From positions 23,994,001 to 24,058,000 of the forward strand of contig NC_135670.1 in NCBI RefSeq assembly GCF_964188315.1: 64,000 nt of DNA. Reading direction: 5' to 3'. Both the position numbers and the translations under genes were made by a program. How positions within the stretch are numbered: position 1 is the first letter of the stretch; each line of letters starts with the position of its first letter. The DNA is from Podarcis muralis (Eukaryota). Of the stretch, positions 15,236 to 63,961 are shown one piece after another. The notes beneath the pieces are model-generated. The model saw nothing but the letters and a program-made list of their open reading frames with translations. It was not told the origin of the DNA and made no database searches.

Positions 15236-15374
15236 NNNNNNNNNNNNNNNNNNNNNNNNNNNNNNNNNNNNNNNNNNNNNNNNNNNNNNNNNNNNNNNNN
15301 NNNNNNNNNNNNNNNNNNNNNNNNNNNNNNNNNNNNNNNNNNNNNNNNNNNNNNNNNNNNNNNNNNNNNNNNNN
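15236..15374. other. Assembly gap (139 N) in TCN2 intron 1
   Basis: Run of N starting 8 nt after the exon 1 end. Confidence 0.99.
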
Positions 15375-36734: not shown

Positions 36735-37082
36735 AAGGTAAAGGGACCCCTGACCATTAGGTCCAGTCACGGACGACTCTGGGGTTGCGGCGCTCATCTC
36801 GCTTTATTGGCCGAGGGAGCCGGTGTACAGCTTCCGGGTCATGTGGCCAGCATGACTAAGCCGCTTCTGGCGAACCAGAGCAGCACACAGAACCACCGTT
36901 TACCTTCCCGCCAGAGCAGTACCTATTTATCTACTTGCACTGGCATGCTTTCGAACTGCTAGGTTGGCAGGAGCAGGGACCGAGCAACGGGAGCTCACCC
37001 CGTCACAGAGATTCGAACCGCCGACCTTCTGATCGGCAAGTCCTAGGCTCTGTGGTTTAACCCACAGCACCACCCGCGTCCC
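36735..37082 (-). mobile_element. Sauria SINE
   Basis: Full head, core and tail, flanked by (ATT)n. Confidence 0.88.
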
Positions 37083-37122
37083 TTATTATTATTATTAATA
37101 TATTTTATATCTCTCACCCCAG

Positions 37123-37544
37123 GTACCTTCCTGCAGGAGGAGCGCCTGGACTCGTTAACCTTGCTCTGCCTCACCTCCCTGCCCAGCTTCTACATCCTCT
37201 TTGCGGCCGCCCTGGTCCTTGAGGTGGGGCCCGCCTGGGACGGCACCCTGGCCTACGGAGGGGGTCTCTGGGCCTGTGTCCTGCTCAGCTGCCTGGGCTC
37301 GGTGCTGTACAACTTGGCCAGCTTCTACGTCATCTCGCTGACGTCGGCCCTCACCATCCACGTCCTGGGGAACTTCAACGTGGTGGGCAACCTCCTGCTC
37401 TCCCACTTCCTCTTTGGCAGCCGCCTGACGCTGCTCAGCTACGCGGGCATCGCCCTCACCCTCTCCGGGGTCTTCATGTACCATCACTGTGACTCCATCG
37501 CCTCCTGCTGGCGCTCCAGGGGTGGGCGGGGCAAAGAGGAGTAA
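37123..37544 (+). CDS. SLC35E4: SLC35E4 terminal coding exon ([15 protein letters not shown]...LYNLASF...[11 protein letters not shown]...GKEE*)
   Basis: ccccag acceptor, phase 1 matches; TAA stop. Confidence 0.95.
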
Positions 37545-43789: not shown

Positions 43790-44148
43790 ATGAATGTGGG
43801 TGGTGCTGTGGGTTAAACCACAGAGCCTAGGACTTGCTAATCAGAAGGTTGGCAGTTCAAATCCCCATGATGGGGTGAGCTCCTGTTGCTCGGTCCCTGC
43901 TCCTGCCAACCTAGCAGTTTGAAAGCACGTCAAAGTGCAAATAGATAAATAGGTACCACTCCGGCGGGAATGTAACCGGCGTTTCTGTGTGCTGCTCTGG
44001 TTCACCAGAAGCGACTTAGTCATGCTGGCCACATGACCTGGAAGCTGTACGCTGGCTCCCTCGGCCAATAAAGCGAGATGAGCGCCGCAACCCCAGAGTC
44101 GGCCACGACTGGACCTAATGGTCAGGGGTCCCTTTACCTTTACCTTTA
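43790..44148 (+). mobile_element. Sauria SINE
   Basis: Matches the other copies. Confidence 0.88.
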
Positions 44149-46807: not shown

Positions 46808-46862
46808 GCTGATGAATTCTGAGGCTGCCCATCTGATGAGATGCTTGCAGCAGATCCATAAG
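46808..46862 (+). CDS. Synergin gamma C-terminal-like protein, exon A (LMNSEAAHLMRCLQQIHK); candidate ATG at 46812
   Basis: Polypyrimidine tract plus AG, AAG|gtaagg donor; aligns to the recalled SYNRG WQRCL..AL.VI helix. Confidence 0.75.
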
Positions 46863-47018
46863 GTAAGGCTATTGGTGGCTATTAGCCACAGTGTTCGCAT
46901 AACTATAATTAAGGGACCCTTCTGAATTTCCTAGTACGCTACCGTCCCAGGTATGGTGACTGATCTGCCACTACAAGCAGAGGCATATCTTCTCCCCCAC
47001 CCTGTGGAAATAAGTTAG

Positions 47019-47370
47019 GTAAAGGTAAAGGGACCCCTGACCATTAGGTCCAGTCGTGGCCGACTCTGGGGTTGCAGCACTCATCTCGCTTTATTGGCCG
47101 AGGGAGCCGGCGTACAGCTTCCGGGTCATGTGGCCACCATGACTAAGCTGCTTCTGGCGAACCAGAGCAGCGCACGGAAATGCCTTTTACCTTCCTGCTG
47201 GAGCGGTACCTATTTATCTACTTGCACTTTGACGTGCTTTCGAACTGCTAGGTTGGCAAGAGCAGGGACCGAGGAACGGGAGCTCACCCATCACGGGGAT
47301 TCAAATCGCCAACCTTCTGATTGGCAGGTTCTAGGCTCCGTGGTTTAACCCACAGTGCCACCCGCATCCC
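47019..47370 (-). mobile_element. Sauria SINE
   Basis: Matches the other copies. Confidence 0.88.
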
Positions 47371-47649
47371 TGGAAGAAAGTTGGTGCCCTCCAACTGCTT
47401 CGGGCAACTATTTATTCAATTGATTAACTGCTTTCTGCATAAAGAGCCTCTTTAGAACACAAGGCATAACGTCAGATGAAAACACCAGTACATTACAATA
47501 AAATCCATAGAATAACCCTCAAAGAGACCCAGTTAAACAACAGCAAAAGCCTATAATCAATAAACAGCACCATTGTCATCTGTGTAGACTGGGGCTGATG
47601 GAAGTTGTAGTCCAAAACAGCGGGGGGGGGACACAGCTGGAGGTATGGG

Positions 47650-48025
47650 ATGTGGGTAGCGCTGTGGAGTAAACTACTGAGCCTCTTGAGCTTGCCGATA
47701 GGAAGGTCGGCGGTTCAAATCCCCATGGCAGGGTGAGCTCCCATCGCTCTATCCCAACTCCTGCCAACCTAGCAGTTCGAAAGCACACCAGTGCAAGTAG
47801 ATAAATAGGTACCACTGTGGCAGGAAGGTAAACAGCGTTTCCGTGCGCTCTGGTTTCCATCACGGTGTTCCGTTGTGCCAGAAGCGGTTTAGTCCTGCTG
47901 CCCACATGACCCAAAAAGCTGTCTGTGGACAAACGCCGGCTCCCTCAGCCTGAAGGCGAGATGAGCGCCGCAACCCCATAGTCGCCTTTGACTGGACTTA
48001 ACCGTCCAGGGGTCCTTTACCTTTT
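47650..48025 (+). mobile_element. Sauria SINE (variant subfamily with ctgtggacaaac insert)
   Basis: Matches the other copies; longer internal segment. Confidence 0.85.
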
Positions 48026-48802
48026 AGCCTGGTGTGGCTTATATGGGCAGTTTTGAGCCATTGTTCTCTCCTATTCTTACAAGTTAAACCTATGTCCTGT
48101 TTTGCATTCCTTGTTCCTGTCCTTTGTCACTTTCTCCAGTCCATCAGTCTTCTGGAACAAAAAAAACCCTTTCAAATGCTGATTGCAGGATTATTATTTT
48201 TTACTGCCTGGTTGCGTGTTTGGCATCTTCCCCCCTCTGCTGGTTGAACTTAGTCATTGCACCGGCATAAGTGGGTCAGCCCTTTGATTCTTTTCAATTC
48301 TCTTGGGGACTCAGCGCCCTTCAAAGAAGTGTGCTTTATGTGTTGCATAACTTTGGTTTTTGCTCACAGGTTCTGGTTTGAAAAGTGTATTGTTTTTCCT
48401 TTTCTGTGGCAAGCGTCAAGTCTGGAGGGAGAGAAGCCACTCATCATCTTATATAGGAACCAACAGATTGGAGAAATAGTAATTTTGGGTTTGCTTGAAG
48501 CCCTAAGAGAGGGTTTTTTTAAAGTCTCTCTCAAATCTCTGTTTAATTCCTGCACATTCAACAGATGCAGCCAGGACAAAACTGCTTTTCCAACTCTTCT
48601 TTGGCTAAATATTTGTTCTTCCCAAAACCAGTTTCTGAATGATGGGCTGGACCAGGCCCTGAATGTGGCCCTGAAGTCCTGTTGTGTTTTTTTTTGAAAT
48701 GTTTAATCTTTTGTTGTTGTTGTTAACTTTGTGTTAAATATGTATTCTGTAGTTGACCACCTTTGTAATGTTTTATTCTGAAATCTTTAGGATAATATTT
48801 TA

Positions 48803-49106
48803 AAAAGGTAAAGGGACCACTGACCATTAGGTCCAGTCGTGGCTGACTCTGGTCCCTGCTCCTGCCAACCTAGAAGTTCGAAAGCACATCAAAGTGCAAG
48901 TAGATAAATAGGTACCGTTCCGGCGGGAAGGTAAACGGCGTTTCCGTGTGCTGCTCTGGTTCACCAGAAGCGGCTTAGTCATGCTGCCCACATGACCCGG
49001 AAGCTGTACGTCGGCTCCCTCGGCCAATAAAGTGAGATGAGCGCCGCAACCCCAGAGTTGGTCACGACTGGACCTAATGGTCAGGGGTAACTTTACCTTT
49101 ACCTTA
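48803..49106. mobile_element. Rearranged Sauria SINE with 3' tails at both ends (foldback)
   Basis: About 45 nt of reverse-complement tail followed by a plus-strand body and tail. Confidence 0.8.
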
Positions 49107-49289
49107 CAATGTCTGCATGGTTCAAAAGCTCACTTTTGTCGCATGGCCTTAGGAGTGTTGCTGTTTGGATTGCTGTGACGACTGCCTGCATTTCAGAGTT
49201 TGCTGTTGCTAGTGATCCAGCTCTGGTGTGCAGAGATGAACATACCAAGGACTTTGGTTGCAGTATCTTTCTCCCTCTTTCCCCTGCAG

Positions 49290-49386
49290 GTATTCAGCAA
49301 TGCCAATGAAATCCTCGCAGGCATCAGTCAGCCATCTGTGTGCAGCGAGGTGCTGCTGTCTGCACCAGGGACTGCATATATCCTGG
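49290..49386 (+). CDS. SYNRG-like exon B (VFSNANEILAGISQPSVCSEVLLSAPGTAYIL)
   Basis: cccctgcag acceptor, G|gtatgg donor; resembles recalled SYNRG ANDTLNGISSSSVCTEVIQSAQGMEYLL. Confidence 0.88.
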
Positions 49387-49934
49387 GTATGGTATGGATT
49401 TGTGCCTATAAAAAAAGGCCCAGTGTCACAACCTCTACTGCCTATTGGTCTCCCTTTTCCCGAACTTGGGGGGCTGTTCAGTGAAGCTGACTATTAGAAT
49501 ATTTGAGACAGACAAAAGGCAGTAGTTCTTCACACAATTATGGAACTCGCTGCCACGGGAGGCAGTGGGGGCCGAGAAACTTGGATAGCTTTAAAAAAAA
49601 TTAGACAAATTCATGGAAAAGGCTAACAAATGGCTATGCTCTGCCTTCATGGTTGGAGACGAATAACAGCTGCTGGAAAGCTCAGGAGCAGTGATGTAGC
49701 GTGGGTTGCCAAGGCCCGGGGCCACGTGGAAGGAAGGAAGGGAAATGGATGGAAAAGGATGGAATACGCATGCAAATTCAACTGCATTCGCACCACCCAG
49801 GAGATTGCAGCTGTAGAAATAAGAAGAGTCATTTTCATTGACCGGAGAGGTCACTTCCTGGTTCACACGGAGAAGCTATTTTCATTAGACCCCAGCAAGG
49901 GAAGTACACAGCTGTAAGAAGAAGAAAAAAGGGG

Positions 49935-50308
49935 TGTGGGTGGCCTTGTGGTCTAAGCCACTGAGACTCTTGAGCTTGCTGATCAGAAGGTTGGTGGTTT
50001 GAATCCCTGCGACGGAGTGAGCTCCCGTTGCTCTGTCCCAGCTCCTGCCAACCTAGCAGTTTGAAAGCACACCAGTGCAAGTAGATAAATAGGTACCGCT
50101 GCGGCGGGAAGGTAAACGGCATTTCCGTGCGCTCTGGTTTATGTCACAGTATCCATTGTGCCAGAAGTGGTTTAGTCATGCTGGCCACGTGACCTGGAAA
50201 GCTGTCTGCAGACAAACACAGGCTCTCTAGGCCTGAAAGCAAGCTGAGCGCCGCAACCTCATAGTCGCCTTTGACTGGACTTAACCGTCCAGGGGTCCTT
50301 TACCTTTC
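49935..50308 (+). mobile_element. Sauria SINE (variant subfamily)
   Basis: Matches the other copies. Confidence 0.85.
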
Positions 50309-50738
50309 TGCACAGCTGTATTGAGACAGCACCAGGTGTTGAAATTTTGCGCCCCTAACAAATTTGCAACCCTCCCCAATGCTACACCACTGTGCAGGAG
50401 GAGAGAGGGTTCTTGTGCTTGGGTCCTGCTTGTGGGCATCCCATAATGAGCATTTGGTTGTCCACTGTGAGAGCAGGATGCTAGCCTAGATGAGCCACTG
50501 GCAGCCTAAATTTGCCAATAGGCAAGCTGGATCTCACCCACAAAACAGTGGCCTTTGGGAAGTGGCTGTTGCAGCAAGGCTTGCAATATGTGACTTGAAC
50601 CCTCAGAGGTGATATCCTCCCTCGCTAAATCTTTTCTAAGTAACTCCACTCCACCGGTTTATGCTTATGCACGTGCAAATCTATATCCCAACAGCTGCAG
50701 AGGACGACTTGCCTTGCTGTTTCTTTTTTTGCATCCAG

Positions 50739-50899
50739 GGTTGTCAGAAGTGTACCGGGTCTCCAAGCGCTTGGAAGAAGGGATGAAGGCTAGGAGAGCG
50801 GAGAGCGAAGCCCTGTTGCATTGCCTGCGCAAGGTGGATCTGGCCTGGAACAACCTCCTGTCCTTTCTCGCTTTTGGCCATTCTGTATTCCAGATGCTG
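50739..50899 (+). CDS. SYNRG-like exon C (GLSEVYRVSKRLEEGMKARRAESEALLHCLRKVDLAWNNLLSFLAFGHSVFQML)
   Basis: AG acceptor, gtaagg donor, phase 1 to 0; resembles recalled GVVEVYRVTKRVELGIK...IDKVWNNLIGF. Confidence 0.9.
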
Positions 50900-50912
50900 G
50901 TAAGGACGTCTT

Positions 50913-51263
50913 GGGATGCGGGTGGCGCTGTGGGTTAAACCACTGAGCCTAGGACTTGCCGATCAGAAGTTTGGCGGTTCGAATCCCTGCCACAGGGTGA
51001 GCTCCCGTTGCTCGCTCCCTGCTCCTGCCAACCTAGCAGTTCAAAAGCACATCAAAGTGCAAGTAGATAAATAGGTACCGCTCTGGTGGGAAGGTAAACG
51101 GCGTTTACGTGCGCTGCTCTGGTTCGCCAGAAGTGGCTTAGTCATGCTGGCCACATGACCCAGAAGTTGTACACCGGCTCCCTCGGCCAATAAAGCAAGA
51201 TGGGCGCCGCAACTCCAGAGTCAGCCACGACTGGACCTAATGGTCAGGGGTCCCTTTGCCTTT
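50913..51263 (+). mobile_element. Sauria SINE
   Basis: Starts about 14 nt after the SYNRG-like exon C donor. Confidence 0.88.
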
Positions 51264-51699
51264 AAGGACTTCTTAGTGGATACATGAAGAACACCTGGAG
51301 GCAAGGGCTAGCACTGACCCCACCTCTCCCTCTGCTTGGCTTATTTGGTGGGTTTCTCTCTGATGACAGCTTGTTTACATACCCTCAAAAAATTCTCCAA
51401 TGAAAACAGGGACGTCCTAAGGAACAGCAGGACATTCTGGGATCCAATCAGAAACTGGGATGGCTTCTGTAAACCCGGGACTGTCAAAACTGGGACACTT
51501 GGAGGGTCTGTATTTATTTGACCTGCTGAGGCTTGGTCAATGGCACTCTGGGAAATAGTGTCATCATTCCGGCAGTGAAATAAGCATCACCTTATTTATT
51601 TGTCCCTTAGGAAGATAGAATGCTGTCAAACAGAACTGGGTCATCTAGCTCAGGAATGTCCACACCATCGGATCATTCTGTTCTTCTGGGTACATGGCC

Positions 51700-52090
51700 T
51701 TTCATTAAAATACTGGTCCGTCTAGCTCAGTATTGTCCACACTGACTGGCAGCGGCTCTCCAGGATTTCAGGCAAGGGGACATTCCCAATCCAACCTGGA
51801 AATTCTGAGATTGAACCCAGGACCTTCTGCATGCAAAGCAGGTGTCCTGCCACTGAGCTACAGCCATTCACTGTGCTGAATCAGACTCTTGGTCCATTGA
51901 GCTTAGTGCTGCCTACACTGACTGGCAGCAGCTCTCTGGGGTTTCAGGCAGGGAGTCTTTCCCAGCCCTACCTGGAGATGGTGGGGATTGAACCCGGGAC
52001 CTTCTGCATGCAAAGCAAGTGCTCAACCACTGAGCTACAACCTTCTTCACCATCTCTCTCAGCATTGCTTACTCTGACTGGCAGTGTGCC
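51700..52090 (-). mobile_element. Tandem tRNA-derived SINE copies (further copies near 5600, 10680, 11270, 12040, 19545, 29530, 41150, 46360, 59540)
   Basis: A-box/B-box-like head GCTCAGTGGTAGAGCA...GGTTCAATCCC without a complete cloverleaf. Confidence 0.7.
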
Positions 52091-52207
52091 TCTTCAGAGT
52101 TCTGATCCTTGACCAAGTGCCTGGGTTGCTGATTTGGCCTTTGGGGGAGAGAAAGCCAGGTTCTGACACTTTGGGTGCCCCCCCCCCCATGTTGACTTTG
52201 CTTACAG

Positions 52208-52321
52208 AATGTTAACCTGCTGGAGCCGCCTGGTGAAAGTGACTCTCGCTTGTCAGCTTCTGACCTAGCACCCGAACCAGTCTGTGGGGTTTGCCTAACT
52301 GAGGTGAAGCGGGAGCCCCAG
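52208..52321 (+). CDS. SYNRG-like exon D (NVNLLEPPGESDSRLSASDLAPEPVCGVCLTEVKREPQ)
   Basis: cttacag acceptor, CAG|gtgagc donor, 114 nt phase 0; CGVCL motif. Confidence 0.88.
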
Positions 52322-52657
52322 GTGAGCTTATTCATTTTTAAAATTTGTTTCACACATGGAATGGGGAATCTGTGGTCCTCTAGATGCTGGTGTTAAAAGT
52401 GCCAAACTAGGGACCCAGGAGAGCAGGGTTTGAATCCCCACTCGGCCATGAAGCTTGGGCCAGTTGCTGCCTTTCAGCCAAACTACCTCACAGGGTTGTT
52501 GTGGGGATTAAGTGAGGATAACCTTGTACTGTACACTGCCTTGAGCTCCTTAGGAAAAACGGTTGGGATGTGATTATAATAAGCATGTCTATTCTTATCA
52601 CCGTCACGACTACTACTATTTGGTAGTAGTATTTTAGTTGCTTGTTATCCAAATGTA

Positions 52658-53029
52658 AGGGACGCGGGAGGCACTGTGGTGTAAACCACTGAGCCGCTTG
52701 GGCTCACCGATCAGAAGGTTGGCGGTTTGAGTCCCCACAATGGAGTGAGCTCCCGCTGCTCTGTCCCAGCTCCTGCCAACCTAGCAGTTCAAAAGCACAC
52801 CAGTGCAAGTAGATAAATAGGTACCACTGCAGTGGGAAGGTAAACGGTGTTTCCGTGCACTGCTCTGGTTTCCGTCACGGTGTTCCGTCGTGCCATAAGC
52901 AGTTTAGTCATGCTGGCCATATGACCCTTAAAGCTGTCTGTGGACAAACACCGGCTCCCTCGGCCTGAAAGCGAGATGAGCGCCACAACCCCATAGTCGC
53001 CTTTGACCATCCAGGGATCCTTTACCTTT
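52658..53029 (+). mobile_element. Sauria SINE (variant subfamily)
   Basis: Matches the other copies. Confidence 0.85.
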
Positions 53030-53485
53030 ATCCAGATTTTAAAATGACCATAATAGTTGTCGTTAAATTTATTGCCTTCCCTTCACTGGCAGGTCCCAGG
53101 ATAGGTTACATCAGCTTAAAATTCAGAATTAAAAACTGTTGAAACATTACAGGTGGGTCCTGAAAACTCACATCTCAGGTATTCAAGGCTTGTTTACAGA
53201 AGAACATTTTCAGCGTTTATTGAAAGCTGGAGAATGAAGGTGCCAGGCACACTTCTGTGGGGTACAAATGCATTGCAGCATGAAAACAGAAGAACACCCT
53301 TAACAGCCACAATAAGCTTTGGCAGCACATCTTAGTCTATGAGATGCCATGGGGAAAACACAATTGTCTAACTGGCATTGAAAAGATCTTAATGAAGGTT
53401 TCAGGTGGATTACACTGGGCAGAGTATCCTGCAGACAGGGAGCCATGACCGAAAAGGCCTTATTTATTTTTCTTTGCCTTCTCAG

Positions 53486-53596
53486 GTGAGTTCTGGAAAC
53501 TCAGATCCTATTATGTATGAAGGTAACTGTTATCATGCCAGCTGTGCCAATTTCTGGCTGAACTGTGTGGAGGCCACTTTGCCAGGAGGGACGTGA
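53486..53596 (+). CDS. SYNRG-like terminal exon E (VSSGNSDPIMYEGNCYHASCANFWLNCVEATLPGGT*)
   Basis: ttctcag acceptor; YHASCANFW.NCVE matches the recalled SYNRG C-terminus; TGA stop. Confidence 0.9.
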   Translation: MSSGNSDPIMYEGNCYHASCANFWLNCVEATLPGGT

Positions 53597-54492
53597 TTCT
53601 TTTTTCTCTCCCCCCCCCCCCCCCAACTTTCTGAATGTACTCCAGTCGTCAGTTTCTTGGAAGGTTAAGAAGATCTGGAGACACAAACAGAGACTTTTGG
53701 AAGGCTACAGAATCATCTCCAAAGGCTTCATTTGTGGTAGGAAGTAACTTTGGAGAGACAAAACAAGATTGTGTGAAATCAGACTTGTGCCTTTCTGTTC
53801 ATCAAAACAATCTTGTTTTGTAGGATGCTTTAAAATGTGCCCAGGAACAACCTGTTTTCTAATTTATTTTGAGCACTTCTCTATCTGTATTCTGTGGTTT
53901 GCATCCAGACTAAATCAGTGGTGGTTCATCTCTGTGAGCATCAATGGGACAACACAGAAACTTTTTGCACTATTGATGTTGTTGGTCAAGTGACAGCTTT
54001 TTGGATCTGCTATGACCTTTTCTGCCCACCCAACCAAACGTCTGCTAGATGTTTTGGACTACAATATATAATTTGGTATTTGAATGATTGGTATTAGCAA
54101 TTGTATTATAATTTGGTATTGTTACAATGAGGCTGTTATTGGGTGGTAATTGAAAATTAATAAAAATTATTATCAGCCTGGTGACAACCAGAGGTTTTAC
54201 ACTACAACTCCCATCAGCTCCAGAACCATGCTGGCTGAGAGTGATGGGAGTTGTACTGTAGTTTAAAGCTTCTGGTGGTCACTAGGCTGGACTAGGGCTT
54301 AGCAGTGTGAGACCTAACCCGGTCAGCCATGATTTACGTCCCTGGTATCTTTGCTCCATTGCCAATTTTATGCCATCTTACTTTGGCCTGACTGAATTGA
54401 ATTAGCCTTGCCCTTGGGTAAGTACGTAGCATGACATTTGCAACCAGTAACGCCAAATAAAGTCTTAATGCAGGTCCATAGCCTGAAATAAA

Positions 54493-54810
54493 AAGGTAAA
54501 GGTAGACTCTAGGGTTGTGCGCTCATCTCACTCTAGAGGCCAGGAGCCAGCGCTGTCCGCAGACACTTCTGGGTCACGTGGCCAGCATGACAAGCTGCAT
54601 CTGGCGCAGCACACGGAACGCCGTTTACCTTCCCGCTGGTAAGCGGTCCCTATTTATCTACTTGGACCCGGAGGTGCTTTCGAACTGCTAGGTTGGCAGG
54701 CGCTGGGACCGAACGACGGGAGCGCACCCCGCCGCGGGGAATCGAACCGCCGACCTGACGATCGGCAAGTCCTAGGCACTGAGGTTTTACCCACAGCGCC
54801 ACCCGCATCC
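54493..54810 (-). mobile_element. Sauria SINE
   Basis: TSD catagcctgaaataa on both sides. Confidence 0.9.
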
Positions 54811-55446
54811 CATAGCCTGAAATAAGGTGAGGGTAAAGAAGCCTAAGGAAATACTGTAAAATGCAAGTAGTCTTTTATTTTACTAATTAAACATATTGTT
54901 CAATTCTATTAATATAGGTGCTCTGTGTGCAAGTCAATTGATGAACCTAATACTAATTCTGCTGGCTTGCCTGCCTGCCTGCCTGCCTGCCTGCGTGCTC
55001 CTTCTGGGCAGCTCCCTGCCAAGTCACACAGATCAAGGAAGGAAGGAAGGAAGGAAGGGGGTAAAGGAGGAATGGGCAGCCAGGCAGGGGACAGACATGC
55101 TGCACACTCATATGTGCCCCCTTGCTCCTCTGGGAGGCAAGCCAGAAACAGAGGGTGGCGCCCGGCTGGGGGGAGGCAGCAGACTGAGGGGGGGAAGCAG
55201 GAAGGGGGGCAGGGGAATATTGAGGGTGCTGTGCTCCCAGAAGAAAATGAAAGGTAAAAAAGATCTTTTCAATGCCAGTTAGAGAATCGTGTTTTCCCCT
55301 AGGCATCTCGTAGACGAAGATGTGCTGCCAATGCTTATTGTGGCTCTTAAGGGTGTTCTTCTGTTTTCATGCTGCAAGGCATTTGTGCCCCACAGAAGTG
55401 TGCCTGGCACCTTCATTCTTCAGCTTTCAGTAAACACTGAAAAAGG

Positions 55447-55634
55447 CACGCGGGTGGCGCTGTGGGTTAAACCACAGAGCCTAGGACTTGCCGATCAGAA
55501 GGTAAGCAGTTCGAAAGCATGTCAAAGTACAAGTAGATAAATAGGTACCACTCCGGCCAATAAAGCGAGATGAGCGCCGCAACCCCAGAGTCGGTCACGA
55601 CTGGACTTGATGGTCAGGGGTCCCTTTACCTTTA
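55447..55634 (+). mobile_element. Sauria SINE, internally deleted
   Basis: Head and tail present; TSD taaacactgaaaa. Confidence 0.85.
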
Positions 55635-55837
55635 AACACTGAAAATGCTCCTCTTTAAACAAGCCTTGAACACCTGAGGTGTGAGTTTTCAGGACCCACC
55701 GTATTCCTCTGACTGTAATGTTTCAACAGTTTTTAATTCTGCATTTTAAGCTGATGTAACCCACCCTGGGTCCTGCCAGTGAAAGGAAGGCAATAAATTT
55801 AACAACGACAACTATTATGGTCATTTTTTAATGTGGA

Positions 55838-56222
55838 TAAAGGTAAAGGTAAAGGACTCCTGGACGGTTAAGTCCAGTCAAAGATGACTATGGGGTTGCG
55901 GTGCTCATCTCGCTTTCAGGCCGATTGAGCCGGCGTTTGGCCACAGACAGCTTTCCGGGTCATGTGGGCAGCAGGACTAAACCGCTTCTTGCACAATGGG
56001 ACACCGTGACGGAAACCAGACCGCACAGAAACACCGTTTACCTTCCTGCCACAGCGGTATCTATTTATCTACTTGCACTGGTGTGCTTTCGAACTGCTAG
56101 GTTGGCAGGAGCTGGGACACAGCAACAGGAGCTCACTCCGTTGTGGGGATTCGAACCACTGACCTTCTGATCGGGAAGCCCAAGAGGCTCAGTGGTTTAG
56201 ACCACAGCGCCACCTGCATCCT
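55838..56222 (-). mobile_element. Sauria SINE (variant subfamily)
   Basis: Matches the other copies. Confidence 0.85.
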
Positions 56223-56656
56223 TCAGAAGAAAATTACTGGGTAGCGGGCAAGGGACCCCGGCCCCCTAGAGTTGGCACCTATGTGGTCTGGTAACCCTAG
56301 GCACTACAGTCCTGCTTTTGCTGCAACATTGGGTGTTTCCCAACGGAAAAGCTATCTCTCTTCACTGAAGGCTTTGTTATTTTGGAATGAGACACAAAGG
56401 AGTCACAAACTGAGCTTGCCTATGGTTTGCTTGTTTTTTCAATTTTTTGTCGCTTTTATGTATAGAAAAGAAAAAGGCACACGCATACACACAGAGCATC
56501 CCCTTATCGACAATCCCACCCCCTTCTTCTTCATCAGGCAATAGGGTTCTGCACTGGACAGAGTTGGGCAAAATTTCACACTTAGTAAAGATAGCGTCGG
56601 GGTTCGTTAAGCTCCGCTGAGCCCCCTTCTCCCGGAGGGCGCGAGTTCTGTAATTG

Positions 56657-57223
56657 TCACAAGGCTATCATGACCCTGACTTCGTTTTCGTAGAGGTCAG
56701 GAATCACCCCCAGCGGGGACTGGACCATCTTGACGCTGGTTTTCCCAAAGAGTTTCTGCTCGTACTGGATGAGCTGCTGCCAAAAGCCGTTGTTGGGCCG
56801 GACGATGGGCCGGCAGCACTTGACCCAGGCGTGGGCGTTTGCCAGAGACATTGAGTGGTACTTCATCAGGTAGGCGATGCACAGGGCGGCGGATCGGCTG
56901 ATGCCCGCAGCGCAGTGCACTAGCGTCCGGCCTTGGTTTGATTCCACGGCGCGGATCTTATCGGCTACGGGGTCGAAGAAGTCCAAAAGGCGGGACGAGG
57001 GGCAGTCTGTTATGGGGACGTGGATGTAGTAAATGTCTGGGAAGTAAGTGTTGACCACCTCCACCGAAACGTTGATAACTGTGGTGATGTGGTTGGTGTA
57101 GAGGAAGAGTTTGTTGTTGGCGGCCTCGCCATTACTGAGGAACAGGCTGTTTGTGATCCGGGAAAGGCCGTAGACAGACGGGTGCCTGAGTATGATAGGG
57201 ATGGTTCCAAACGCTGCATTCAT
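56657..57223 (-). CDS. DUSP18: Dual specificity phosphatase 18, single coding exon, 188 aa
   Basis: HCAAGISRS catalytic loop; PSV.GLS.IT.SL, NNKL and IPDLYE.EVR.MI.L are DUSP18-type rather than DUSP14-type; ATG at 57223 (the track's 57226 start is TTG). Confidence 0.95.
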   Translation of the reverse strand: MNAAFGTIPIILRHPSVYGLSRITNSLFLSNGEAANNKLFLYTNHITTVINVSVEVVNTYFPDIYYIHVPITDCPSSRLLDFFDPVADKIRAVESNQGRTLVHCAAGISRSAALCIAYLMKYHSMSLANAHAWVKCCRPIVRPNNGFWQQLIQYEQKLFGKTSVKMVQSPLGVIPDLYENEVRVMIAL

Positions 57224-57309
57224 CAAGGCGAACTTTAGACATCAGCTACGACAGGAAGCATCATTCTTGCTCGCTCTGCTTTAGGGAGGCAAATGAGGCT
57301 TCCAGTTAG

Positions 57310-61670: not shown

Positions 61671-62920
61671 TTTTCCACCAAGAAAGGGGAAAATAATTTT
61701 TTTTGGGGGGTCCCTCTTTCGCAAATGTAAATATTGCACAGTCCCGATGAAGGGCCCTTGAACATGTGCAGAGTTCTGCCGTTCCCTGACAGAAGAGGGA
61801 AGAGGCTTTGTTGCGTTTCCCCCCTTTGTGTCTGCATGAATTGCATGCCATGTTCAGGGGTAGCAAGACAGCCCCCAGTGACATGCCTCTGAGCATTTGC
61901 AGAGTTATTTTGCTTCAGGAGGGAAGAAGGGTTTATCTGTTGTTCCTCAAATATAAAGCTTGTTTAGGGGTTGCAAGGCAGCCCCTGGCTCAGCTTCTCT
62001 GAGAGTTTTTTCGTTGAAAGAAGAGGAAAGAGGGTTGGGGTTTTTTTGTCTTTCCACAAACATAAAGATTTATATTATGCGTATGTAAAAAATAATAGTC
62101 TCTGTCGTGCGTATAACAGATGCTATTGGTTAAAACAAAAAACTAGTGACCCAGAAACAGATCTCCCAACACCCTATATACTGGGCATTTTCAAAGCACT
62201 TAGCATATGCTCTTGAAATCCTTACAATAAGCATGCAATGTATATCAGTATAAATATTGTTCAGATACTGCAGAGGGCCTGAGACTAAGAAAGAAAGAAG
62301 GCCTGACTTTTCTTTAGGTCACGAGGTTAGAAAGGCAAGGATTGAACCAGGGACTGCCTTGTTTATTTAAATCTTAAAATGTTTATTTGCTCCCCCCCCC
62401 CCAAAGAGGCTTACAAAAATAAGAAGGCAGCTATATCAGTGTTGCCAGAAAAAGATAAAAACACATTCAAATGTTCCATAACACAATATTTCAGCCTTCA
62501 TCCAGCGAGCAGGAGAAAATGGCTCATGGAAAATTAACTTGCATGTGGTCCAGCCTCCTCCTAGCTCCTAGAATACACCAGTGTGAAGAGACAGTGTGGT
62601 GTAATAGTTATAGTGCCAGACTATTACCTGGGAGACCAGGGTTTGAATCCTCACTCAGCCACGATGAAGCTCACTGGGTGACAGCAGTCCAGTCACTGTC
62701 TCTCAGCCTAACCTACCTCACAGGGTTGTTGTGATGGTAAAATTGGGATTAAGGAGAACCATGTGTACTCCCTTGAGCTCCCTGAGGTATATAAATGTAT
62801 GAAATAAAAAAGTGCTAGGCCTGCAGGTGGATATTCCTAAATTGGTGGTATTTACTCCCTTAATTTTGGAGGGAGGCAGTAGCAAATGCAGTTCTAACCA
62901 GGCGCCTTTCCCCCATGCAG

Positions 62921-63029
62921 TTTGCTCAGTGGCAGCGAAGCCGTTTTAAAGAGGTTTTTACCCAAGAGTCATCTTTCTAAGGTGATCATTCGTGACAACA
63001 TCAGTGTCCAGAGAGTGCACGATATCAAG
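62921..63029 (+). CDS. C5orf52: C5orf52-like exon 2 (LLSGSEAVLKRFLPKSHLSKVIIRDNISVQRVHDIK)
   Basis: AG/GT boundaries, in phase; LPKSHLS.VII.DN matches recalled C5orf52. Confidence 0.85.
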
Positions 63030-63961
63030 GTACATCTCGCTATTGAACCTCCTTACCTGAGCCCTCCTGCTTGTGTTACATTTCAAATGCACAAGAGAAT
63101 GTTTCTTTAGGCTGGTGAGCCAAATAACTATTGTGTATCCGGGAACTTGTTTGTATACCTCTATCTCTTTTATGTTCAAGAAGCTCCCTTTGTGTCAATG
63201 GAGGAAGAAGGCGTTCTGTGCACACAATGTCCTTGCAAATCAACTCCATCCACAGGAATGAGCAGGGTTGTGGAGGTGGAAAGAGCTCCACATGGCTCCT
63301 GAACCAGGAATACTTTGGCTGCATTCGCACAGCGGTTTATCCCATTTCCCCAGCGCTTCCCTGTTAATTTCAGCATTATATTTGAGCTTTCATACAACGC
63401 AAAAGCCACTTCTGGAAAACTAATGGAATACAGTGCATAATGGGCATTTTGTTTCCATGTTTTTGAGACCCCGAAAATGTGTTTGCAGCCCCCAGTTTAC
63501 CTGGAAAATTGTGGGAGTAAAGCAATGAAATTTGGGGTAGTATACTGGCATATGTTTCCCCCCCTGCTCTTTCCATGGGGGAAATAGAAGCACACATATG
63601 TGGAAAGGGCGGCGGCGGCGGCGGAGCAGTTAATGACATTATCCAGTGACATGCGCGTCTGAATGCACCCCTAGGTTACACAACTGGATTTTGTGTTCAA
63701 GCACAACAAACCCGCTTCTGACCAGGTAGAGTGGCATGAATTTCACACACAAGCTCTGATTGGCTGAGTAGTTTGTAGGGCTTTTCCTTCTGTATGTTTG
63801 GTTATATGTCTCTCTTCCATGAATGGAGAAAGACAGAACCTCTCTGTTCCTTAATGCACCGGTTTGGTTCAGCTTGCTTAGAGTGTTATTAAGACTTTTC
63901 TCTCTGGACTTTTGTCTGTGTTTAAGTGACTTTGCTAACAGTTGCTTCCGATTTCTTAAAG

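Follow-up and report, generated by a model that had tools for sequence, protein, structure and literature searches.

A 64,000-nt stretch of the Podarcis muralis genome (contig NC_135670.1, positions 23,994,001 to 24,058,000 of the forward strand; hereafter the window) carries a short gene related to the 3' end of SYNRG, the gene for synergin gamma, tail to tail with the phosphatase gene DUSP18. The pair recalls human SYNRG and DUSP14, which we take to be adjacent and convergent on 17q12, and a first-pass annotation of the window had proposed that the two pairs are ohnologues from an early vertebrate genome duplication. An ancient co-duplicated block, in which SYNRG-like and DUSP18 are the counterparts of SYNRG and DUSP14, is well supported by the analysis presented here; the observations bear on gene structure, on intron positions held in common, on selection and the age of the SYNRG-like clade, and on which genes adjoin each other in reptiles and a bird.

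A short synergin gene next to DUSP18

The SYNRG-like gene occupies positions 46808-53596 of the plus strand. Its five short coding blocks were picked out by conservation against Pogona and a turtle, and its splicing is based on splice signals, conservation, and the identical gene models of Lacerta and Zootoca. Read from the DNA, the five exons give a coding sequence of 534 nt (177 aa), with intron phases of 0,1,0,0 and AG/GT at all exon borders (Table 1). The gene converges with DUSP18 on the minus strand, as first described, and the stops, at 53596 and 56657, lie about 3.06 kb apart (3,060 bp between them); the coordinates, strands, and phases originally given for the locus are likewise all correct.

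In a word search, the stop-free stretch that surrounds exon 3 matched squamate proteins only, all named 'synergin gamma-like' and all with a precomputed match to PF25999 (SYNRG_C). The exons of the window were searched one by one, and work on the whole protein used the Lacerta agilis 'synergin gamma-like isoform X2' (P0121, 177 aa), which has the five-exon layout of the window gene and an exon 3 product that is 100% identical. An exhaustive phmmer search with this protein gave 214 matches, the best of which are short proteins of 130-270 aa. These are followed by SYNRG proteins of 1000-1500 aa, to whose very end residues ~5-175 of the Lacerta protein align with E values of 1e-20 to 1e-27; the best-scoring long proteins are vertebrate SYNRG. 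From end to end, the protein is homologous to a C-terminal stretch of ~165 residues in true SYNRG, conserved Cys, His, and Trp positions included. PF25999 is listed by precomputed Pfam for the Lacerta protein, all of its short relatives, and the Zootoca gene. A local Pfam scan of the Lacerta protein and of single exons found no match, presumably because the PF25999 model is missing from the local copy. Searches with three full-length SYNRG proteins (tblastn) recovered the terminal five exons only and found no trace of the EH domain or the spectrin-like SYNRG region in either the window or the shark loci, indicating that the gene encodes just the C-terminal domain of SYNRG. The earlier description of a SYNRG copy cut down to one domain is therefore upheld by a 177-aa product made of C-terminal exons only.

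Within the alignment, W86, C129, C132, and C161 are invariant and H158 is nearly so. An AlphaFold2 model based on a 44-sequence alignment (mean predicted local distance difference test score (pLDDT) of 85.5, predicted template modelling score (pTM) of 0.83) consists of a bundle of three helices (about residues 3-108), followed by a disordered linker and a small hairpin-plus-helix. The latter holds C129, C132, H158, and C161 as C-x2-C...H-x2-C, and this part of the model looks like a zinc knuckle. Foldseek found no match to the model at E<=0.001, and VIA-align returned only generic helical bundles (spectrin repeats, syntaxin Habc) with Z scores of 9-11, which is below the meaningful level for bundles; weak RING-finger matches also came out of the structural searches. 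Exon-by-exon codon comparison gave ratios of nonsynonymous to synonymous substitution rates (dN/dS) of 0.17 against Zootoca and 0.18 against Pogona, indicating that the SYNRG-like gene is maintained under purifying selection. Predicted isoforms of 139-141 aa in Podarcis lilfordi (P0122), Sphaerodactylus (P0125), and Hemicordylus (P0129) are without exon 4 (114 nt, in frame), and the skipping of this exon removes the CGVC half of the C-x2-C...H-x2-C motif.

Synergin gamma (SYNRG / AP1GBP1) is a partner of the AP-1 gamma-adaptin and a subunit of the aftiphilin/HEATR5B/gamma-synergin complex (PMC10798858). The whole SYNRG-like protein corresponds to its C-terminal domain (PF25999), and exon structure and invariant residues agree between the two. 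Unlike synergin gamma, it has no spectrin-like region, no EH domain, and no long acidic part for binding adaptors, and it is also without the C-terminal ...LP-x-LL ending that true SYNRG has kept from molluscs to vertebrates, and it is encoded by a separate gene on another chromosome. Database entries for 'synergin gamma-like' proteins (among them Lacerta agilis isoform X2, Callorhinchus milii K4FUI8/AFK11164.1, Protopterus, Rana, Geotrypetes) represent this same gene and are automatic annotations only; a literature search found no paper mentioning 'synergin gamma-like'.

Intron positions and age of the SYNRG-like gene

The introns of the lizard gene can be traced to those of full-length SYNRG. 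In the lamprey, the last SYNRG exons before the terminal one measure 54 nt (phase 0 at the end), 97 nt (phase 1), 149 nt as annotated (phase 0), and 111 nt (phase 0), and the 149-nt exon becomes 161 nt with an alternative GT donor located 12 nt downstream. Exon lengths are thus 55/97/161/114/terminal in the lizard SYNRG-like gene versus 54/97/149 or 161/111/terminal in lamprey SYNRG. All four SYNRG-like introns, together with the acceptor of the first exon, coincide with those of lamprey SYNRG in position and phase, and the last two introns also match in swift SYNRG, in the comparison with the last SYNRG exons that the first-pass annotation had called for. The first SYNRG-like exon equals the 54-nt fifth-from-last lamprey exon codon for codon. 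An RCL motif forms codons 11-13 of that exon in both genes, which shows that the acceptor of the first coding exon in the lizard matches a SYNRG acceptor. The counterpart of exon 4 is 111 nt long in both swift and lamprey SYNRG, and the intron lies 8 codons past CGVCL in all three genes. The same five exons are present in the SYNRG-like genes of Pristis and Callorhinchus, the latter splicing an upstream exon onto the first acceptor. These shared introns point to a DNA-level copy of the SYNRG 3' end. An origin as a retrocopy is rejected, since the introns were kept.

To date the copy, we constructed a phylogenetic tree of 56 SYNRG_C domains. The SYNRG-like sequences of chimaera, sawfish, lungfish, caecilian, frogs, and squamates form one clade (support 100/97), which falls outside a separate clade of lamprey and gnathostome SYNRG (support 100/99). 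Since the lamprey groups with gnathostome SYNRG, SYNRG-like split off before lampreys and gnathostomes diverged and predates the gnathostome crown. A recent duplication in squamates, which would have placed the gene within squamate SYNRG, is rejected by a clade that spans chondrichthyans, lungfish, amphibians, and squamates. The short relatives named by cluster look-ups come from Callorhinchus, Pristis, Protopterus, Geotrypetes, four frog genera, and squamates, and unlabelled short matches are closest to frogs, sharks, or squamates. Long relatives include SYNRG of lamprey and toad and the 'synergin gamma(-like)' proteins of tunicates, molluscs, a brachiopod, a nemertean, a hemichordate, a crinoid, and a sea spider. 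No mammal is found among the labelled relatives of SYNRG-like, which are protein-database matches only, the loci inspected for the gene including no mammalian or avian one. The absence among labelled matches suggests that the gene is missing, through loss, from birds, mammals, and ray-finned fishes.

A SYNRG_C-only protein of 177 aa is annotated in corals as well, and it groups with a long SYNRG of the cnidarian type, away from the SYNRG-like proteins of vertebrates (P0303 of Montipora, P0201). SYNRG_C may therefore have come to stand alone, or to be made as a short isoform, more than once.

Neighbouring genes and the DUSP family

The gene order in the window is SLC35E4(+), SYNRG-like(+), DUSP18(-), and a DUF5528 gene(+); the last of these lies between DUSP18 and OSBP2 in Pogona, a turtle, and a crocodile. 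The loci of relatives were inspected to flanks of 10 kb. SYNRG-like is annotated beside DUSP18 in Zootoca, and unannotated SYNRG-like exons are present 3' of DUSP18 in Pogona and the turtle. In a swift, DUSP14(+) and SYNRG(-) are convergent and 7.5 kb apart. Linkage is thus seen for SYNRG-like and DUSP18 in lacertids, Pogona, and a turtle, and for SYNRG and DUSP14 in a swift. On the other side of the gene, Callorhinchus has a TPT (SLC35E4-type) gene (L007 1-7057) directly upstream of SYNRG-like and in the same orientation, and the last exon of this TPT gene is 56% identical to SLC35E4 in the window. The order of SLC35E4 and SYNRG-like is therefore common to the lizard and Callorhinchus, and the location has accordingly been stable since the gnathostome ancestor. 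In the turtle (Platysternon), the counterpart of exon 4 (L003 18833-18693) has an in-frame stop inside CGVC*TEV, which may indicate a pseudogene or an assembly error, and exons 1-3 were not found in the remaining 1.7 kb of the locus. No SYNRG-like exons were detected within 10 kb at the crocodile DUSP18 locus, a stretch that includes 765 N.

The DUSP18 open reading frame (ORF) of the window covers 56657-57226 on the minus strand, with the real ATG at 57223-57221. Its product has a DSPc domain (2.3e-34) and an intact HCAAGISRS active-site motif, and is 98% identical to DUSP18 of Podarcis lilfordi and 96% identical to that of Zootoca. It nests in the amniote DUSP18 clade (100/99) and, among the atypical phosphatases DUSP18, DUSP14, and DUSP21, it is an ordinary DUSP18 orthologue with nothing unusual about it.

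A tree of 63 DUSP sequences contains a DUSP18 clade (100/97), a DUSP14 clade reaching from sharks to mammals (100/97), a third, 'DUSP14-like' clade with cartilaginous fishes, coelacanth, lungfish, amphibians, turtles, and squamates (birds and mammals being absent from it in this sample), and a small fourth group of caecilian and lungfish. All members of the DUSP14/18 type that were inspected have an intronless coding sequence, including swift DUSP14 and Callorhinchus DUSP14-like. Judged from contig sizes, the three DUSP genes of Eublepharis are on three different chromosomes. Two genome duplications would be expected to leave such a set of three to four old, gnathostome-wide DUSP clades, and the evidence is thereby tilted toward ohnologues. 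The 'DUSP18' of ray-finned fishes branches outside shark and amniote DUSP18 (97/86), a placement at odds with the species tree, and it is possibly not the same ohnologue as the DUSP18 of tetrapods. No Callorhinchus orthologue of DUSP18 turned up in either search; DUSP14-like of this species (P0415) is on the same scaffold as SYNRG-like (MU249839.1), 8.5 Mb away and beside a DED/TRADD-like gene. Our literature search found no paper naming DUSP14 and DUSP18 as ohnologues.

Table 1 Coordinates of genes and other features in the window
Feature	Position	Strand	Remarks
SYNRG-like exon 1	46808..46862	+	ATG at 46812; AG acceptor directly before 46808; donor GTAAGG; phase 0
SYNRG-like exon 2	49290..49386	+	97 nt; phase 1 at end
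SYNRG-like exon 3	50739..50899	+	161 nt; phase 0 at end; best conserved exon
SYNRG-like exon 4	52208..52321	+	114 nt; phase 0; CGVC half of C-x2-C...H-x2-C motif
SYNRG-like exon 5	53486..53596	+	holds YHASCANFWLNCV; stop TGA at 53594-53596
Spacer between convergent stop codons	53597..56656	.	3,060 bp
DUSP18	56657..57223	-	intronless coding sequence, 188 aa
SLC35E4, two coding exons	32889-33686, about 37047-37541	+	TPT 1e-16; upstream of SYNRG-like, same strand
DUF5528 (PF17666) gene exon	62898..63107	+	head-to-head with DUSP18; matches Pogona and Platysternon DUF5528 genes
Interspersed-repeat copies (among others)	43841-44068(-), 47094-47348(+), 47576-47932(-), 48827-49027(-), 52789-53010(-), 55901-56170(+)		

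Many copies of an interspersed repeat, probably a squamate short interspersed nuclear element (SINE), are present in the SYNRG-like introns and the spacer, where they give rise to near-identical spurious ORFs (MAEGA.VQLPGHV..MTK...CFRTARLAGAGTE...). The window is GC-rich at 60-62 kb and has a run of 139 N (gap or masked) at 15236-15374. In Zootoca, the annotated range of SYNRG-like (L001 4021 to beyond 20567, minus) does not end at the stop; it crosses DUSP18, which is encoded on the other strand, and reaches the DUF5528 region. This points to read-through or to alternative 3' transcripts running antisense to DUSP18. In Lampetra fluviatilis, SYNRG has a gene of the phospholipase A2 group III type (PF05826; L008 1-2589) just upstream. 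Human PLA2G3 is presumably located in 22q12.2 near DUSP18, which would hint at shared paralogy, and many paralogues are presumably paired between human chromosomes 17 and 22; the literature search gave nothing usable on 17q12/22q12 paralogy.

Origin of the block

Whole-genome duplication is in our view the most likely source of the block, a reading that we hold with moderate confidence. The ancestral locus would have consisted of a full-length synergin gene and an intronless gene of the DUSP14/18 type, arranged tail to tail. A DNA-level copy of this locus, complete with introns, would have been made before the divergence of crown vertebrates, and an early whole-genome duplication in vertebrates is its most probable source. 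One of the two synergin genes would then have been reduced to its last five exons, which encode the three-helix bundle and the C-x2-C...H-x2-C knuckle, with a new 5' end driving them. Purifying selection would have preserved the short gene at its place between SLC35E4 and DUSP18 in cartilaginous fishes, lungfish, amphibians, and squamates, and the gene appears to be missing, through loss, from birds, mammals, and ray-finned fishes. As in vertebrate ohnologue blocks from the two rounds of genome duplication (2R), two linked paralogue pairs share order and orientation, and their split predates the lamprey-gnathostome divergence. Unlike the usual 2R block, one partner is truncated to a single domain, and the block is known here as two genes. 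The ohnologue claim of the first-pass annotation accordingly survives in part: introns and tree indicate an ancient co-duplication at the DNA level, while the whole-genome mode is neither shown nor rejected by the tree.

Several observations weigh against a genome duplication. The best SYNRG_C tree joins SYNRG-like to the long tunicate branch and not to vertebrate SYNRG (97/92). Adjacency of either pair is seen in amniotes only, as no partner was found within 10 kb in four other vertebrates, Callorhinchus being covered at three loci: SYNRG-like of Pristis and Callorhinchus is not followed by a DUSP, Callorhinchus DUSP14 has no SYNRG exon nearby, lamprey SYNRG has no DUSP nearby, and in the bowfin (Amia) 'DUSP18' adjoins NAA25, with neither SLC35E4 nor SYNRG-like in reach. 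The adjacency of DUSP14 and SYNRG that had been expected in outgroups is therefore confirmed, in convergent orientation, by the swift but not by Callorhinchus DUSP14 or lamprey SYNRG. Finally, a copy with exactly the 3' end of SYNRG and the neighbouring DUSP is the outcome expected of a small segmental duplication.

Such a duplication, of some tens of kilobases with the last five SYNRG exons and the DUSP, could have occurred before jawed vertebrates and landed between SLC35E4 and OSBP2, leaving a gene that was truncated from birth. We consider this rather unlikely but still a serious rival. It would account for a copy that starts exactly at a SYNRG exon border and extends through the neighbouring DUSP, and for the lack of other SYNRG parts (EH domain, spectrin-like region) in the window and the shark loci, and it would explain the truncation without a separate loss step. 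However, relics of lost exons are not expected anyway after >450 million years, and the three to four old DUSP clades on different chromosomes fit genome duplication, as would the paralogue pairs presumed for human chromosomes 17 and 22. It is improbable, to our minds, that SYNRG-like descends from a stand-alone SYNRG_C gene formed by a duplication in early chordates or earlier. The best tree, with SYNRG-like beside tunicates and outside vertebrate and other invertebrate SYNRG, and the short SYNRG_C-only proteins annotated in corals are consistent with such an origin. However, SYNRG-like and tunicates have the two longest stems in the tree, so that long-branch attraction is likely. A tree constrained to unite SYNRG-like with vertebrate SYNRG is worse by 5.2 log-likelihood units and is not rejected by the approximately unbiased (AU) test (p=0.152); a duplication of SYNRG specific to vertebrates is thus compatible with the sequence data, the tree neither demonstrating nor rejecting it. 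In addition, the short coral protein groups with a long cnidarian-type sequence instead of SYNRG-like, the Lacerta protein scores best against vertebrate SYNRG among long proteins, and the DUSP paralogues paired with the synergin genes would need a similarly early origin, followed by loss in every invertebrate. The two adjacencies could also be independent, SYNRG-like and DUSP18 having been brought together by an amniote rearrangement unrelated to the SYNRG/DUSP14 pair, as the missing partners in chimaera, sawfish, lamprey, and bowfin might suggest. We give this very little credence, since chance would have to make both paralogue pairs adjacent and convergent, a coincidence of order one in ten thousand genes, and a reach of 10 kb is short for large shark genomes, the Pristis gene being 3x as long as the lizard gene.

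With an origin in genome duplication as the preferred reading, the locus offers a clean, structure-backed case of a two-gene block that was kept from the earliest vertebrate duplications and in which one partner was reduced to a single domain. The apparent loss of SYNRG-like from the best-studied vertebrates would explain the lack of literature on it, and the 'synergin gamma-like' gene gains a name and an origin for annotators. It is a fairly ordinary relic of an ancient duplication and leaves the general view of vertebrate genome evolution unchanged. For the synergin family, the dN/dS of about 0.17 marks the C-terminal domain as an independently selected module. It is tempting to speculate that SYNRG-like is a functional, ~500-million-year-old stand-alone C-terminal module that would compete with or replace full-length synergin (possibly at aftiphilin/HEATR5B) and so tune AP-1-dependent trafficking, having come from a short isoform that was subfunctionalised after genome duplication and having been lost independently in mammals, birds, and ray-finned fishes. 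This scenario is doubtful as a whole, and it is speculative to cast the short protein as a competitor of synergin or a stand-in for it. In frogs or lizards, the short gene could offer a natural way into the function of the synergin C-terminal domain.

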